From Eutreptiella sp. 'Long Island Sound 2002' (taxonomy: Eukaryota > Protista > Euglenida): a stretch of 64,000 nucleotides of DNA. A model generated the notes under the pieces. The model searched no databases, had not been told where the DNA came from, and was given only the letters and a program-made list of their open reading frames with translations. Made by a program: the position numbers and the translations under genes. The stretch is from contig OZ038378.1 of the NCBI GenBank assembly GCA_964036045.1, positions 145,080,001-145,144,000 of the forward strand, written 5' to 3'. Each line of letters starts with the position of its first letter. The stretch's first letter is position 1. Shown here piece by piece: positions 11,891 to 24,492 of this stretch.

Positions 11891-11918
11891 CGAAAAAAAA
11901 TGGACACTCAGAAAGTGT
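11891..11918 (-). other. euglenid spliced-leader exon copy at the LINE 5' end
   Basis: Minus strand ACACTTTCTGAGTGTCCATTTTTTTTCG, 27/28 to the euglenid SL as recalled. Abuts the TSD exactly. Confidence 0.9.
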
Positions 11919-18500: not shown

Positions 18501-19213
18501 GTGCAGGACTAGTGCTTCAGATCAATGGGGTCATGGTTGGGTTACAGCATCGCCTGAATCCAACCCCAAAAAAGATACGCCCCAAAAACAAAACCCCAGA
18601 CCCACAAGCACTGCGCCACGGTGGCGGTAAAACAAACTTACACACATGTGCAGGGTGCCTTTTGGGTTCCTCTTTCAGCAAGGTGCATGGGAAGCCGAAC
18701 TGATGAGGGGCCTCTGCCAAGGAGGTCAGGTACGTAGGTATTAAGTGTGTAACCTCTCGGGTTGCAGGCAACAAAAGAATTGTGCGACCAGCCACCAAAC
18801 GAAAAGACACTCAGAAACGCACACACACGCACACGATTGCAAGACAAACGGGCACAACTCAGGTTCCGAGTGTCAGAATCCTCGTCAGTTGGATCGTCAA
18901 ACAAAACAGAGCATGTCCGATGCCAAGAGGCGCCTTTCTGCAGCACAGGTAATGGGCAGAGGTGGGTACGCATTGTGGGGGATGCAGACACACACAGAAA
19001 CACACACACACACACACACACAGCTGCCAATGCTGCTCCGAACAGCTCTCGACCAATAAAACCTGCGAGGCCAGAGTGCAACCCACACACCCACCCACGC
19101 TTTGATCACAAGGATACTGGTTGCCTGTACAAGCCACAGAACCAACACGCTAGCGTGCCATGGCCCTCTGGCAATGCATGGCAATGCAGTGCCGCTGCAT
19201 GTCTGCCTGCTTT

Positions 19214-22200
19214 TTAGACCGCTGACTCAAGGGCAGGGGGACGCAGCCCCTCTAGGGCCGCGGTCAGGTCCGGGTTGTCATGCTTATGCACCCACTCTTC
19301 CAGGCACTCCTCACAGACCACCGGGTAATAGTCGGTGTCCCGCATCAACGCAGGCCATTCCGTGAGGATCCACATGTAGAACTCCTCCGGCTCCATCCAG
19401 TCGCCCCCATTGCAGAAGGACCACCCACAAAAGGGGCAGCGGTGCAGCACCGACGCCACATCGCCCGCCATAAAGCTGACGGGCACTTGGTGTGGGCTCT
19501 CTGCCACCGTCACGTTGGTGAACAGCAGCGAGTTCCCAAAGCGGTACACAAAGCTGATCATTTCCCGGCGGTTGTCCGGGTCGTCGCAATACCACTGGAA
19601 CTGGGTGTGGCACAGGTCGCCATCCCAGACCAACGAGCACAGGGTGTGGTAGAATCCTGCGAGTCGGTGCTCCATGAACATGGTCAGGGGCTGACCCTGC
19701 ACGGCGGAGGGGGTCGGGACCGGGGGATCGAGGGGAAGGTCGGCAAAGCGGATCCACTCCTCCGGGGTCATGACCTCCTGAATGATGCAGGCACGGTCCA
19801 CACTGTAGACAATGACGCGGTGCAGGTCCGGGTTGTACTCGTACAGCTTGTGCTTGCAACGAGTGCATGCAAACGGGTGGTTCTTGATGACCTCTACGTT
19901 CTTCGTGTGGATGCCAGCCTTGACGGTGACGGTAGTCTGCACACCGGCACCCACGCACAGCTCTGAGCCGGCCAGCTGCAGGTCATTGAACGTGCAGGAG
20001 GCCTGCATGGCCTGCACTAACGCCTCCGTCCCCTGCGGTGTGACCGCACTGTACTCCAGGTCAAGACTCTGGAATGCACGTGCAAACCGGATCCCATGTG
20101 CCAGCGCCTGTGCGCCCTCCTCCCCAACGTGATTCTGCCGCAGGTTCAGCCTCTCAAGCTGGCGCGCCTGCGCCAGCGCGTGTGCCAAGGCCGTGACACC
20201 CTCGGCGCCGATGCCGCAGCCCTGCAGATCGAACTGCCGCAGGGATTGGGAGCGGGCGAGTCCGGAGGCCAGTGTCTTGGCCCCTTCATCGGAGATGGGC
20301 ACATGAGTGAGTGTCAGGCTTTGGAGCGAGGCCGACTCGGCCAGGGCCTGTCCAAGCGCCTCAATGCCCTCTGGCTCTGCCTCGCAGCATCCCACGTTGA
20401 GGCTCAAGAGCTGCGTGGCCAAGCGGGCAACTGCGGCCATGGCCTGGGGCTCCAAATGGCAGGACTCGAAGTTGAGGTGTTTCACCGTCTTGCACTTCCG
20501 GAAGGCCTCGGCGAGCACGCGGGCGGTGCCGAGCTGCAGGACGTTGTGCGACAGGTCAACGCTCTCCAGCGACGGCGCTACTTCGACCGCGCGGGCGAGT
20601 GCCTCTCCCCCTTCTGCGTCCACGCCGACTCCAGAGAGCCCGAGGACCCGCAACTTTTTCGCGCGCGCCACGCCCTCGGCGAGGGCCTTCGTGCCGGGCG
20701 CGGCGAGCGTGTTGGTGTTCAGCAGCAGCTCCTGCAGCCGCGAGGCGCCGGGGAGGGCCTCGCCCAGGGCCATGGCGCCGAAGTGCGTGATCTGGTTGTC
20801 GGAGAGGTTGAGGCGCTCCACGGAGGACCCGGGCAACGCCTCCGCGAGGCACTCCGCGCCCCCGTCCCCCAGGGAGTTGCCCTTGAGACTCAATCCGGAC
20901 AACGCTGGGGAGGCGGTGATGCCGCGCTTCAGCAGCGGCAGTCGCATGCCGATGTTGGTGAAGTCCAGGTTCACGTACTTCAGCGTCGAGGAGCCCTCGA
21001 GGCACTCGCTCAGGCCCTCCAGCGCGGCGTCGGACAGCGGCGTGAAGGCCATGTTGAGGCTCTGCAGCGTCGGGGCGTTGGACAGACCCTTCGTGATGTG
21101 GTCCGTCTCGGCGGGGCTCAGCGTGCACGCCCTGAAGGCCAAGGCCCGTAGGCTCGTGGAGTGCCCCAGCGCCCGCGTGAACTCCTCCATCCCCTGATCA
21201 CCGAAGGTGCAGTTCTCGAACTCGACGGACTTGATGCGTTTGGAGTGCGTCACGAGGTCCCCGAGGGCCACGAGGCCCTCGTCGCCGATGGCGAGGCCGC
21301 CGAAGCTCCAGGTCTCGATCGAGTCCTGCGCCATCGCCGCGAACGCCAGCTCGACGATGTCGGCGGCGTCAGTGCCCGTGTGATGAAGCGACACCGACCG
21401 GAGTGACTTGCTGGTGGAGATCCGGTCGCCCACGCGGGAGGCGTCGAGGCCCCAGTCCACAACATTGAGGCTTCTGCAGTGGGCGTTGGCCAGCAGGTGA
21501 TAGAGGCGATGCTCCTGCTTTGAGTTCAGCGCCTTGGCGACGGCGATGTGGATGGGGACGCACCGGGCAAACTTCTTGTTCACCAGCCGCCACTTGCGCT
21601 TTGCGTTCTCAAACAGGAAAACCTCCGACAGGATGTCATCCGGGAGGAGGCCGATGCTACAGCGCGTGTGCTGAACCAGGTACTGCTGCCGCAGCTCCTG
21701 GGGGACGTAGGGCTGCGACAGGCTGAGGCCCCTCGGCGCCTCCGGTGTGGCGGCCGTGGGACTCGGTGCGCCATCCTCTCCGCCTGCATCGGCCTCGGCC
21801 TCGCTCCCCCGCGACGCGTGACGGGCGGCACTGCGCGCCAGCCCCTGCGCCGCCTCTTTGGCCGGGCCGGACCACGACGCAGGGGGCGTGCTCTCCGCGA
21901 CGGCCTTTGCGGCAGAAGGAGGCAGATCCAGCGGCCGGTGGTTGATGTTCGTGACGTTGGGCACACCGCCCCATTGCAGCTGCTGTGGAACGCTCTTCCG
22001 GAACCACATGAATGCCACGTCCTCAGAAGGCGCCTCGAGCAGGCATCCGACCGCGCTGTCTGCCACCTCCTCCGCCTTTGGGTACACCTGCGCCAGGGAA
22101 GTCACCGCCAGCCGGCCGCAGCAGCGGTTGATGGCGTACTCCACCAGCTCCCGGATCTGGTCTTCTTTTGGGGTGCAGCCCCTTGCGACCACTTGGCCAT

Positions 22201-23359
22201 TGTACACCGCGGCTGCCCCATCGCAGTCCATCAACGACTGCAGGCCGCTGTCCCCTGCCGCGAAGGCCTGGACGGGATCGTTGGACTCCCGCAGGCGCTG
22301 CAGAATGGCCGCGCGGACGGACCGGGTGCGCTCGCGCTCACGGGCCTCGTCGTTGATCTGCAGCTGCTTCACCTGCTGCGCAAGGACCTCAGTGGCCATC
22401 TGACACGCCACACGGCGCTCAAAGGGCACATAGAGGGGGCTCAAGTGATGACAGTATAGCAGACCCCAGAGCTTCGCGTCCACGATGATGGCGTGGCACA
22501 TGGAGCTCTGGACCCCCTGATTGGTCAGATGCGTGAGGTGGCAAGGTGCCACGGCCCGGATGCCCACCATAGACATATCGGGCCGCCGGCCTGTGTCCAC
22601 GTCATTCTCAGGGATCAGCGGGACCTCACCAGCCCTGACATCAGGGAAATGGGTGAAGAGGTTCCGGAGAAACAGCTCCCGGGTGTACTTGGGGGTGACC
22701 TGTGCTGGCCACTGCTTTCTGTAATACACCTCCACGCCCTTGCCCTCGTTGATCTTCTCTGCAACGACTTCGCAGTGCTCGGCCTCATGGAACTTCAGGA
22801 CCATCACCCGATCATATCCCGTGTCCCTCTGGATGGCCTCCACCGCCAACTGACAGGCATGATCACTGGTGGTGGTCCCTGGCAGCTGCTTGCTGACGTT
22901 GTGCACCAAAGCGCCCATCTTCAACTTCGACACGGCCTCACATGGTTCCAACTCTAAAAATGACACGTTGTCGCGAGTATGGAAGACTCCAGTGAAGGCA
23001 CTTCTGCAGTCGCCTTTGCCCATTTCAATGGGGATGCCCGACATGGCCTTGTATGACGCGTGGCTCAGTTCAGTCTCCAAAATGGTGTTGTAAGCAGCCT
23101 CCCCAATGATGGTCTTGAGTTTCTGCAGCAGGACCTCTTCGACTGTGAACCCCAGGTCTGTGATATTGGCGCTCACTTGGTTGATGATGAAAGTCTTGCT
23201 GCACATGATCAGCAAGTATCCGTGCGGCTGCACGGCACTGTGCAGCCCATCGCGAGAGCGCGTGTTCCATCCTGCTTTATGGTTCTTGCTGTCTTTCCGG
23301 GACTGCGGCAAATGAGGAGGCGCCCACGGCTGTATTGCATCCAGATTGCGGGAGCTCAT
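19214..23359 (-). CDS. phytochrome(PAS-GAF-PHY)-F-box-LRR fusion protein with C-terminal PAS-like/Cys4 domain, ~1381 aa, intronless
   Basis: PAS: VQPHGYLL...INQVSANI...FLELEP. GAF: GYDRVMVLKF, EVVAE, IRAVAPCHL, LWGLLYCHH. PHY: DCDGAA, TPKEDQI, WFRKS...WGG. F-box-like: LLPDDILSEVF...WRLVNKKF. ~18 28-aa LxxLxL repeats follow. First ATG after the SL relic is at 23359 (the ORF track starts at a GTG inside the SL). Confidence 0.9.
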   Translation of the reverse strand: MSSRNLDAIQPWAPPHLPQSRKDSKNHKAGWNTRSRDGLHSAVQPHGYLLIMCSKTFIINQVSANITDLGFTVEEVLLQKLKTIIGEAAYNTILETELSHASYKAMSGIPIEMGKGDCRSAFTGVFHTRDNVSFLELEPCEAVSKLKMGALVHNVSKQLPGTTTSDHACQLAVEAIQRDTGYDRVMVLKFHEAEHCEVVAEKINEGKGVEVYYRKQWPAQVTPKYTRELFLRNLFTHFPDVRAGEVPLIPENDVDTGRRPDMSMVGIRAVAPCHLTHLTNQGVQSSMCHAIIVDAKLWGLLYCHHLSPLYVPFERRVACQMATEVLAQQVKQLQINDEARERERTRSVRAAILQRLRESNDPVQAFAAGDSGLQSLMDCDGAAAVYNGQVVARGCTPKEDQIRELVEYAINRCCGRLAVTSLAQVYPKAEEVADSAVGCLLEAPSEDVAFMWFRKSVPQQLQWGGVPNVTNINHRPLDLPPSAAKAVAESTPPASWSGPAKEAAQGLARSAARHASRGSEAEADAGGEDGAPSPTAATPEAPRGLSLSQPYVPQELRQQYLVQHTRCSIGLLPDDILSEVFLFENAKRKWRLVNKKFARCVPIHIAVAKALNSKQEHRLYHLLANAHCRSLNVVDWGLDASRVGDRISTSKSLRSVSLHHTGTDAADIVELAFAAMAQDSIETWSFGGLAIGDEGLVALGDLVTHSKRIKSVEFENCTFGDQGMEEFTRALGHSTSLRALAFRACTLSPAETDHITKGLSNAPTLQSLNMAFTPLSDAALEGLSECLEGSSTLKYVNLDFTNIGMRLPLLKRGITASPALSGLSLKGNSLGDGGAECLAEALPGSSVERLNLSDNQITHFGAMALGEALPGASRLQELLLNTNTLAAPGTKALAEGVARAKKLRVLGLSGVGVDAEGGEALARAVEVAPSLESVDLSHNVLQLGTARVLAEAFRKCKTVKHLNFESCHLEPQAMAAVARLATQLLSLNVGCCEAEPEGIEALGQALAESASLQSLTLTHVPISDEGAKTLASGLARSQSLRQFDLQGCGIGAEGVTALAHALAQARQLERLNLRQNHVGEEGAQALAHGIRFARAFQSLDLEYSAVTPQGTEALVQAMQASCTFNDLQLAGSELCVGAGVQTTVTVKAGIHTKNVEVIKNHPFACTRCKHKLYEYNPDLHRVIVYSVDRACIIQEVMTPEEWIRFADLPLDPPVPTPSAVQGQPLTMFMEHRLAGFYHTLCSLVWDGDLCHTQFQWYCDDPDNRREMISFVYRFGNSLLFTNVTVAESPHQVPVSFMAGDVASVLHRCPFCGWSFCNGGDWMEPEEFYMWILTEWPALMRDTDYYPVVCEECLEEWVHKHDNPDLTAALEGLRPPALESAV

Positions 23360-23384
23360 AATGGATGGCACAAAAAGTAGATCT

Positions 23385-23412
23385 CGGAAAAGAATAGACA
23401 CTCAGAAGGTGG
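23385..23412 (-). other. relic euglenid spliced leader upstream of the phytochrome fusion
   Basis: Minus strand CCACCTTCTGAGTGTCTATTCTTTTCCG, 24/28 to the SL, 25 nt before the ATG. Confidence 0.85.
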
Positions 23413-23636
23413 TGTGGCAATGTTCTTTTGCGTTGGCTCCTGTGGGGAAGGGGAAGGCTCCCATGGGTACTTGGTTGACAATTCTATGTCCAAAGCCTCA
23501 GCACTCCTTTCAAGCAAAACCTTTTTTGTGGGCAACACACCAAGGGCTGGGTGGAACTCTAACTCACCCTAATCAAGACTGAATATTGGGACCGAGCTGG
23601 TGGGGGGGGGGGGGATAATAGCGACAGGCGGGAATA

Positions 23637-24492
23637 AGGATGCATGTTGAGGGACACAAAGAACGATTCCCACCCTTCAAAACCTTCCTCACTCGCTTCG
23701 CTCACTAGAGAGACATGCCCCCTAGCACTCTTCTCGCACCCCTCCCCCCGCATTCCCCCCTGGATCCCCTTGTGCTGCACTGGTCCAAAATTGCCCATTT
23801 CAAGGCTCATTGGACCAATTGAGGTGCTCAAACAAGCGAGTTTAGGCTATTTTGAGCCATATTTGACCCATAGTAGCCAAATGCAACTCCCCCAAACCCT
23901 TGAAATGCGCAATTTTACGACCAACGAATGGTCCGGGGGTCCAGGGGGGATATGCTGCGTTTGAATACCATGGATTGGGTTGGGCACCCTTGTGGTGATA
24001 CATATGATGAAGGGGATGAGCTGCAAGCTATCTCCACGCAGTCAACACCTTTCATGGCCCTATTGGAGTGGTGTAGCGTGCACAGTGCATGTGCTAGGGT
24101 AGGGTTAAGGGGTCACCGGTGGATGCAAAAGCAGTCAACAATGATTTTTCCACAGTGGATCCTAGACCACTTGGGGAGCTCAAACAAGTGGTTTAAGGCT
24201 ATTTGGAGCCACCAGGGGGCATGCCTCTTCAGCGAGCGGAGACATTTTGCAAGCCATATGAGCGCATATAAGCTCACAAAACATCCTTGAAATGTGCAAT
24301 CTTGGGACTGACAGTGCTGCAAACGGGGGTTCCATGGGGAATGCGGGGGGAGGGGTGATAGGGCAGGGGTGCGAGAAGAGTGCTAGGGGGCATGTCTCTC
24401 GAGTGAGCGAAGCAAGCGACGAAGGGTTTCGAGACCGGTATAAGGGGGGAAAGTGGCGGGAATCGTACTTTGTGTCCCTCAACATGCATTCT
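23637..24492. mobile_element. 856-bp non-autonomous DNA transposon / foldback with long imperfect TIRs and TA TSD
   Basis: TA|AGGATGCATGTTGAGGGACACAAAG ... CTTTGTGTCCCTCAACATGCATTCT|TA. Inverted similarity extends ~250-300 bp inward. Confidence 0.8.

Follow-up and report, generated by a model that had tools for sequence, protein, structure and literature searches.

A Phytochrome-Like/F-Box-Like Chimeric Gene in a Eutreptiella-Type Euglenid, Apparently Unique in the Databases Searched

Overview of the Fusion Gene

The window analyzed here is a 64,000-nucleotide stretch of the genome of the marine euglenid alga Eutreptiella sp. 'Long Island Sound 2002' (assembly GCA_964036045.1, contig OZ038378.1, positions 145,080,001 to 145,144,000 of the forward strand), and on its minus strand lies a gene (19214-23359) that joins a phytochrome-like photosensory module (PAS-GAF-PHY) to an F-box-like motif, a long series of leucine-rich repeats (LRRs) and a conserved C-terminal domain. 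The fusion is real as DNA and as a single mRNA, which is intron-less and spliced-leader (SL) trans-spliced, and the product is a phytochrome-like/F-box-like chimera that is apparently unique in the databases searched. The reading we favor, and judge moderately probable, is that of a lineage-specific chimeric retrocopy that has come to be trans-spliced again, and that encodes a receptor of SCF (Skp1-cullin-F-box) type carrying a phytochrome module that would be locked, not one that switches between the red-absorbing (Pr) and far-red-absorbing (Pfr) states.

In a word-indexed search of 5.8 billion proteins, the database protein of this gene (P0001) was alone in combining phytochrome and LRR families. 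The best 150 matches of a HMMER scan of 1.84 billion cluster representatives were LRR-only or phytochrome-only, with no second fusion, which would have ranked at the head of the list. An initial annotation, made from the nucleotide sequence alone, had described the gene as a candidate light-gated ubiquitin ligase adaptor of novel architecture. No protein or paper with this layout was found, so that part of the claim stands, but the idea itself is preceded by the RING domains of some algal phytochromes, where a phytochrome is joined to an E3-type domain (PMC4525182). An F-box/LRR partner of a phytochrome is reported neither in that study nor in the other literature found.

The Fusion as DNA and as mRNA

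A DNA-like short-read contig of run X1 carries 19030-23662 in one piece, and a contig of X6, which differs from X1 in sample and in label, covers 21334-22176, across the fusion junction. In run X3, four abutting contigs extend over 19030-23383 with an even depth of 60-78, and the one at 21419-22579 spans PHY, the linker, the F-box-like motif and the first LRRs. X3 was taken as RNA-like because it has a contig that terminates precisely at 23383, a position that the DNA-like runs cross. Over the whole gene, the DNA and RNA contigs show no joint in any run and no step in depth at the fusion junction, and the absence of joints indicates that the gene has no intron. An assembly chimera is rejected in view of the DNA contigs from two samples and the RNA contigs that bridge the junction, and the single uninterrupted frame that had been annotated at 19214-23359 proved correct, along with the positions given for the Cys codon and the F-box-like motif.

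The gene is expressed in four environmental (estuary) RNA samples. Three estuary RNA runs (X5, X7 and X8) have a common gap at 21756-21913, and X9, the fourth, lacks contigs from 21718 to 22325. The DNA of the linker is extremely GC-rich, and comparable gaps occur elsewhere at the low depth of the estuary runs. A hidden intron, or a pair of transcripts meeting at the linker, was considered and found to be unsupported, as X3 covers this stretch evenly, with neither joints nor loose ends.

The pattern of polymorphism suggests that purifying selection acts throughout the protein, sensor module included, and the module is probably not decaying. Among the DNA and RNA contigs, 21 polymorphic sites are visible, a small sample taken from assembled contigs; over the whole gene 13 of 17 transitions are synonymous, against an expected 35% (p = 5e-4), and in the phytochrome part 7 of 8 (p = 0.003). 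At 19 sites between 19105 and 23257 (gene and 3' flank), or about 0.4% of positions, run X3 has the alternative base at full depth, an indication of allele-specific expression or of a second haplotype or strain.

Trans-Splicing and the Retrocopy Origin

The open frame listed for the window runs uninterrupted from 23401 to 19214 on the minus strand and opens at a GTG codon, and the first ATG of the mRNA is at 23359. The latter is taken as the real start because the 5' end of the mRNA lies at 23382/23383 and P0001 is 1381 aa long. The complete coding sequence (19214-23359) thus has 1381 codons followed by a stop codon (19214-19216), and no introns, there being no joints in any RNA run. Estuary metatranscriptome contigs from X5, X8 and X9 stop at 23383, each followed by a loose end, GAAAAAAA on the plus strand, and these eight extra letters read TTTTTTTC in the mRNA sense, which is the 3' end of the SL, the sequence of which in E. 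gracilis is ACTTTCTGAGTGTCTATTTTTTTTCG (PMC6242988). The mRNA therefore starts at 23382/23383, and its 5' untranslated region (UTR), as defined by the RNA contig ends and the sequence, is 23360-23382.

Immediately upstream in the genome, at 23385-23407 on the minus strand, is a relic SL with two mismatches to the euglenid SL, and directly 3' of it is the AG trans-splice acceptor (23383-23384), after which the exon begins in the RNA contigs of X5, X8 and X9. An SL search of the window gave 2 matches, where 0 are expected by chance. An SL sequence lying 5' of the trans-splice site and followed by AG identifies the gene as a retrocopy of an SL-capped mRNA, and this origin explains the lack of introns. 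The relic now seems to supply both the pyrimidine tract, in the form of its T-rich end, and the acceptor for renewed trans-splicing. The same relic SL arrangement is present in a paralogue, P0184 (L003, 5909-5931).

Further SL-like sequences occur on the minus strand at 18795-18818, about 400 bp 3' of the stop codon and within a high-depth stretch, and at 11891-11913, with one mismatch. The 3' flank or 3' UTR contains a (GT)n microsatellite (18984-19029) at which every short-read contig breaks, so that the poly(A) site cannot be placed. On the 5' side, 23487-23667 is a very high-copy repeat, where the DNA-like runs reach a word depth of at least 1e5, compared with about 20 over the gene, and many of the reads that enter the repeat at about 23566 carry telomere-like (CCCTAA)n repeats on the far side.

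The Photosensory Module and Its Relatives

Pfam detects PAS_2 (residues 41-139), GAF (167-330) and PHY (346-475) in this order in P0001, with scores of 34.8, 42.8 and 76.8 bits, all above the respective gathering scores of 21.4, 22.4 and 27, and the solved photosensory modules of Cph1, BphP and FiDCB align over about 430 residues (E values from 1e-55 to 1e-52). On the minus strand, PAS_2 is at 22943-23239 and the GAF bilin-pocket domain is at 22370-22861, followed by PHY at 21830-22324 (residues 346 to about 510), where the Pfam match covers profile positions 2-134 of 183. The Cys of the N-terminal, BphP-type attachment site is absent, with Asn at that position, and Cys273-His274 (Cys codon at 22541-22543) align with C259-H260 of Cph1. 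These results uphold the original description of a PAS-GAF-PHY module with a Cys-His pair of the plant/cyanobacterial type.

The proposal that light gates the protein fared less well. When the pocket was compared with those of 43 other phytochrome modules, the Tyr at position 176 of Cph1 and the Asp at 207 (DIP motif), each conserved in 43/43, were found to be replaced by L188 (22796-22798) and V221 (22697-22699), and the residue at Cph1 Tyr263, which is Y in 40 and F in 3 of the other modules, by H277 (22529-22531). The PRxSF motif of the tongue reads DLPPS (21914-21928), in a tongue of the same length as that of the paralogue P0048; the motif is kept in 13 of the 15 other rows for which the tongue alignment was read, the variants being PWRSF in P0075 and ARVDF in P0076. 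Retained are H260, H290, R254, R213 and WGG (21965-21973), all conserved among the other modules. A D207L substitution leaves the bilin bound but gives essentially no (steady-state) photoconversion (PMC4658570). Tyr176 couples isomerisation to the tongue transition, and its substitution produces a fluorescent protein and, in plants, one that acts independently of light (PMC11924222). With D207, Y176, Y263 and PRxSF all replaced in pocket and tongue, light control is unlikely, as is a classical reversible Pr/Pfr switch.

In a tree of the 44 modules, the protein of the window falls in a clade with 100/100 support together with P0048, P0057, P0075, P0076 and P0153, and forms the longest terminal branch of the six. 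The five paralogues (L006, L007, L010, L011 and L012) all come from one assembly, ERZ25074135, of which the window is part (contig ctg9258), and the occurrence of a six-paralogue clade in a single assembly indicates that this euglenid has a phytochrome family of its own, with at least six phytochromes carried by the genome; no paper on euglenid or Eutreptiella phytochromes was found in the literature searched. P0057 and P0075 have a complete PAS-GAF-PHY module followed by HisKA, HATPase and REC domains, P0048 and P0076 consist of the photosensory module only, and P0153 has GAF, PHY and kinase domains. The four paralogues checked for their attachment sites (P0048, P0057, P0075 and P0076) carry the BphP-type N-terminal Cys and a Gly at the GAF Cys site.

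The Linker, F-Box-Like Motif and Leucine-Rich Repeats

Between PHY and the F-box-like motif is a low-complexity linker rich in Ala, Ser, Gly and Pro (21650-21829; residues ~511-570), about 60 residues long and predicted to be disordered (AlphaFold pLDDT below 50). In canonical phytochromes, the exit helix of PHY runs straight into the output module. A floppy linker of this length, if correctly modeled, argues against the usual helical coupling and would be compatible with regulated occlusion or with dimerisation, so that the direct (allosteric) coupling of chromophore pocket to ubiquitination that had been suggested finds little favor here.

The F-box-like motif (21557-21649; residues 571-601) aligns column by column with the homologues described below, in which the pattern LPxE(I/L)L...F...W/L..V is kept. 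Pfam F-box-like is the best family in 3 of 4 members tested, scoring 25.0 bits in the segment of L004 (E value 1.7e-5; gathering score 24.3) and 16.4 and 15.6 bits, both below threshold, in L001 and L003. A language-model search with the window's own segment gave nearest clusters that are all F-box (score 0.85), which serves as a lead only, and a word-based search with the F-box region returned only the cluster of the query. Profile support for an F-box, obtained through the homologues, is moderate, and homology of the motif to F-boxes is probable on this evidence.

The solenoid that follows (19910-21553) consists of about 19-20 LRRs of the ribonuclease inhibitor (RI) type with a period of 28 residues (LRR_6, E value 1.4e-28), and is supported by a confident model and by the repeat count, with 16 clean 28-residue beta-motifs at residues 709-1124 preceded by about four degenerate units. 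The top folds matched by the model are ribonuclease inhibitor, NLRP, NOD2 and axonemal LRR proteins, and no Skp2, FBXL or TIR1 chain is present among the top 50 fold matches.

The C-Terminal PAS-Like and Cys-Rich Domain

The last ~230 residues (19217-19909) make up a conserved Cys/His-rich domain, and conservation within the family is highest at residues 1150-1381 (47-71% identity). A PAS-like core, identified from a structural model and Foldseek, is placed at 19493-19870 (residues 1164-1289) and has as invariants CxxCxH (C1165, C1168, H1170), C1241, C1250-H1251 and C1258. It is followed by a Cys-rich tail, delimited by alignment (19217-19492; residues 1290-1381), with the invariants CPFC..C (C1308, C1311, C1316) and CxxC (C1349, C1352), a pattern that would probably bind zinc. 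Pfam gave only weak, sub-threshold matches to treble-clef and AN1 zinc fingers and no PAS match, and a language-model search with the domain was uninformative (scores 0.69). The model has a mean pLDDT of 55, rising to 63-80 in the core, which forms a two-plus-three-stranded sheet with helices. With this low-confidence model as query, the top 50 Foldseek matches were all PAS domains (ARNT, PER, HIF, FixL, PYP and LOV; E values from 2e-3), and a second structure aligner gave Z scores of up to 7.1 against PAS domains over 87-98 residues. We tentatively regard it as a PAS-like domain with zinc sites that probably binds a ligand or a partner.

The initial annotation had read the output half as an F-box followed by some 18 RNI-type LRRs in the layout of FBXL/TIR1 substrate receptors. 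Its F-box has moderate support, through the profile scores of homologues, the window copy being without a Pfam match; the repeat count was slightly low; and the order of domains is that of FBXL proteins, with repeats of RI/NLR type in place of the Cys-containing kind. The C-terminal domain, and the family of stand-alone paralogues, were missed.

Stand-Alone Relatives and the Origin of the Fusion

The C-terminal 810 residues have close relatives without a phytochrome module, which make up a euglenid family. The nearest are P0190, from the same genome, and P0002, from a transcriptome of E. braarudii, with 57% identity to the corresponding part of the window protein. These two are identical at 811 of 814 residues, and the cluster of P0002 includes the EukProt entry Eutreptiella braarudii MMETSP0809, which makes the genome that of E. 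braarudii or of a species very near to it, in agreement with the estuarine origin of the RNA samples. Their mRNA is trans-spliced 41 nt before the ATG, as judged from the first letters of the transcript, TCG, which replace the genomic acceptor TAG. Other members are P0184 in the same genome (46% identity), which has the relic SL upstream; P0182 (L004; 46%), with a transcript that begins with the SL; P0183 (48%), a 5'-partial transcript on a contig lacking the N-terminus; and P0003, on the metagenome contig L002 (41%), where the upstream frame has an in-frame TGA. The F-box-like motif lies within the first 10-20 residues of the members with a 5' end (L001, L003, L004 and L002). The TGA of L002 (190-192) falls exactly at the conserved Trp of the motif (RKWRLV), and could be a sequencing error, the mark of a pseudogene or a sign of a code in which TGA specifies Trp.

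Both kinds of possible parent are held by the same genome, namely a module-only phytochrome (P0048) and stand-alone receptors (P0190 and P0184). The relic SL is 24 nt before the phytochrome ATG, so the mRNA that was retrocopied already began with the photosensory module. A search of the linker sequence found neither a relic SL nor a poly(A) tract as a fusion scar.

Interpretation and Alternatives

We propose that the locus carries a chimeric nuclear gene confined to its lineage, that of a Eutreptiella-type euglenid, which persists as an intron-less retrocopy and is trans-spliced anew at the AG just 3' of its own relic SL. The family formed by the F-box-like motif, LRRs and C-terminal domain would most likely be a substrate receptor of an SCF-type ubiquitin ligase, in which the F-box-like motif may dock on Skp1 while the LRR solenoid and the PAS-like/zinc domain hold substrates or ligands. 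The copy in the window would have gained its N-terminal PAS-GAF-PHY from the organism's own bacteriophytochrome-like clade, and in this module, which is conserved as a protein, the residues linking isomerisation of the bilin to the tongue have been lost and the clade's N-terminal Cys has been swapped for the Cys-His of GAF. The result may be a locked module, possibly bilin-binding (bilin-sensing or fluorescent) or else dimerising, that recruits or regulates the receptor. Given the loss of the photoswitch residues in a protein that is under constraint, its possible roles can be ranked. Most likely, the locked module serves to dimerise the receptor or to bring it to partners of the organism's own phytochromes; next comes a bilin binder without a Pr/Pfr cycle, which would sense the supply of bilin or mimic a constitutively 'on' state; and last, and improbably, a photoswitch proper whose chemistry is unconventional. 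A natural 'phytofluor-like' bilin binder, reporting bilin availability (e.g., a plastid-derived signal) or an unconventional photochemistry to the SCF-type receptor, is a possibility that we consider rather doubtful.

Several observations weigh against the reading just given. Run X3 is taken as RNA from its behavior, there being no library record for it, and the polymorphic sites sampled are few. The F-box-like segment of the window copy has no Pfam match at all, a profile of the region gave 0 matches to PDB sequences, and the AlphaFold model, built on an alignment of only five sequences, leaves the motif unfolded (pLDDT below 50). The LRRs are of the RI/NLR type and not the 26-residue, Cys-containing type of FBXL proteins. 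In addition, the constraint on the sequence and the preserved Cys-His, H290, R254 and WGG could mean a working pocket with unusual photochemistry.

This last point leads to a working light-gated SCF adaptor, responsive to red/far-red or another color, in which photoisomerisation would control ubiquitination and which would be a phytochrome analogue of ZEITLUPE/FKF1. The retention of R213 along with the residues just named, purifying selection on the sensor module, expression in natural estuarine populations and the wide spectral diversity known among algal phytochromes (PMC4525182) all agree with it, but the replacement of D207 by Val, of the otherwise invariant (43/43) Y176 by Leu and of Y263 by His, the absence of PRxSF, the block on steady-state photoconversion caused by D207L (PMC4658570) and a disordered linker of about 60 residues that breaks the usual helical link to the output module make such an adaptor unlikely. 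A different possibility is that the protein is no part of an SCF complex, the motif being a degenerate cap at the N-terminus, or else an interaction helix, in an RI-type LRR scaffold (such as an adaptor of the cytoskeleton or axoneme) to which the phytochrome module was added as an interaction or dimerisation domain. The missing Pfam match in the window copy, the empty PDB profile search and the structural matches of the LRRs, the best of which are axonemal LRR proteins, NLRPs and ribonuclease inhibitor instead of Skp2/FBXL, are all as such a scaffold would predict, and one source annotates the family as RanGAP-like. Set against this, the motif sits at the extreme N-terminus of the stand-alone members whose 5' end is present and keeps its LPxE(I/L)L...F...W/L..V pattern, F-box-like is the top Pfam family in 3 of 4 members (above threshold in one), and the language-model neighbors are F-box clusters, and we hold a non-SCF scaffold to be possible though not likely. 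Least credible is that the gene arose as a chimera of the assembly, or is a dead, functionless retrocopy of chimeric make-up, and we regard this as very improbable: the region is repeat-rich (relic SL, flanking high-copy repeats and long interspersed elements (LINEs)) and a single contig carries the gene in the protein collection, but each junction is crossed by independent contigs, from short-read DNA as well as from RNA, and the 4.1 kb frame is intact, SL trans-spliced, expressed in four environmental samples and shows an excess of synonymous polymorphism.

The outputs known for phytochromes are kinase, cyclase, GGDEF/EAL, PAS and, rarely, RING domains. Joined to an F-box-like LRR receptor, a photosensory module would add a new class to these outputs, and could connect a sensor of tetrapyrroles directly with proteolysis. 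Were the module a 'phytofluor-like' bilin binder that signals to an SCF-type receptor, it would be the first sensor of phytochrome origin to be incorporated in the ubiquitin system, and would belong to the first family of phytochromes described from euglenids. The loss of D207, Y176, Y263 and PRxSF under purifying selection makes the protein a test case for what a phytochrome module does after photoswitching has been lost, and it might be a bilin protein with natural fluorescence. In addition, the locus illustrates how retroposition of SL-capped mRNAs may build and re-activate chimeric genes in euglenids.

Comparison with Known Systems

The closest parallel in layout is with ZEITLUPE/FKF1/LKP2, which also have a PAS-superfamily sensor N-terminal to an F-box-type motif and putative substrate-binding repeats, and follow the same principle, in which an SCF receptor incorporates a sensor. 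Those proteins use a flavin-binding LOV domain and Kelch repeats, whereas here there is a three-domain phytochrome module with LRRs, a long disordered linker and no photoswitch residues, and the two have no sequence relationship. Pfam found no LOV/PAS_9 and no Kelch match in the window protein, which is thus not a member of the ZEITLUPE group. FBXL proteins (Skp2, FBXL3 and TIR1/COI1) share the N-terminal F-box-type motif placed directly before a long LRR solenoid, an order also seen in the stand-alone paralogues, but differ from the window protein in that the latter has 28-residue RI/NLR-type repeats, an extra zinc/PAS-like C-terminal domain and a weakly detectable F-box.

Within its own phytochrome clade, the window protein has 32-42% identity to the paralogues and has the R222 substitution and tongue length in common with them. 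The paralogues keep D207, Y176 and Y263, which the window protein does not, and have the N-terminal Cys with a GAF Gly where the window protein has the reverse arrangement; three of the four compared also have the tongue motif, which is degenerate (ARVDF) in P0076, whereas the window protein has lost it; in the latter the F-box-like/LRR part replaces the kinase. The pocket itself resembles those of engineered phytofluors (WiPhy2 D207L/Y263F, Cph1 Y176H and the iRFPs), where the same positions are substituted, including D207 by an aliphatic residue, and where the substitutions keep the bilin bound, block Pfr formation and raise fluorescence (PMC4658570, PMC11924222). Phytofluors are laboratory mutants of bacterial proteins, whereas the changes in the window protein are natural and extend to the loss of PRxSF. 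Finally, the algal RING phytochromes (Li et al. 2015, PMC4525182) likewise combine a photosensory module and a ubiquitin-ligase-type domain in one polypeptide. Their RING is a catalytic, E2-binding domain within a kinase-containing output, while the module described here is joined to a putative SCF substrate receptor.

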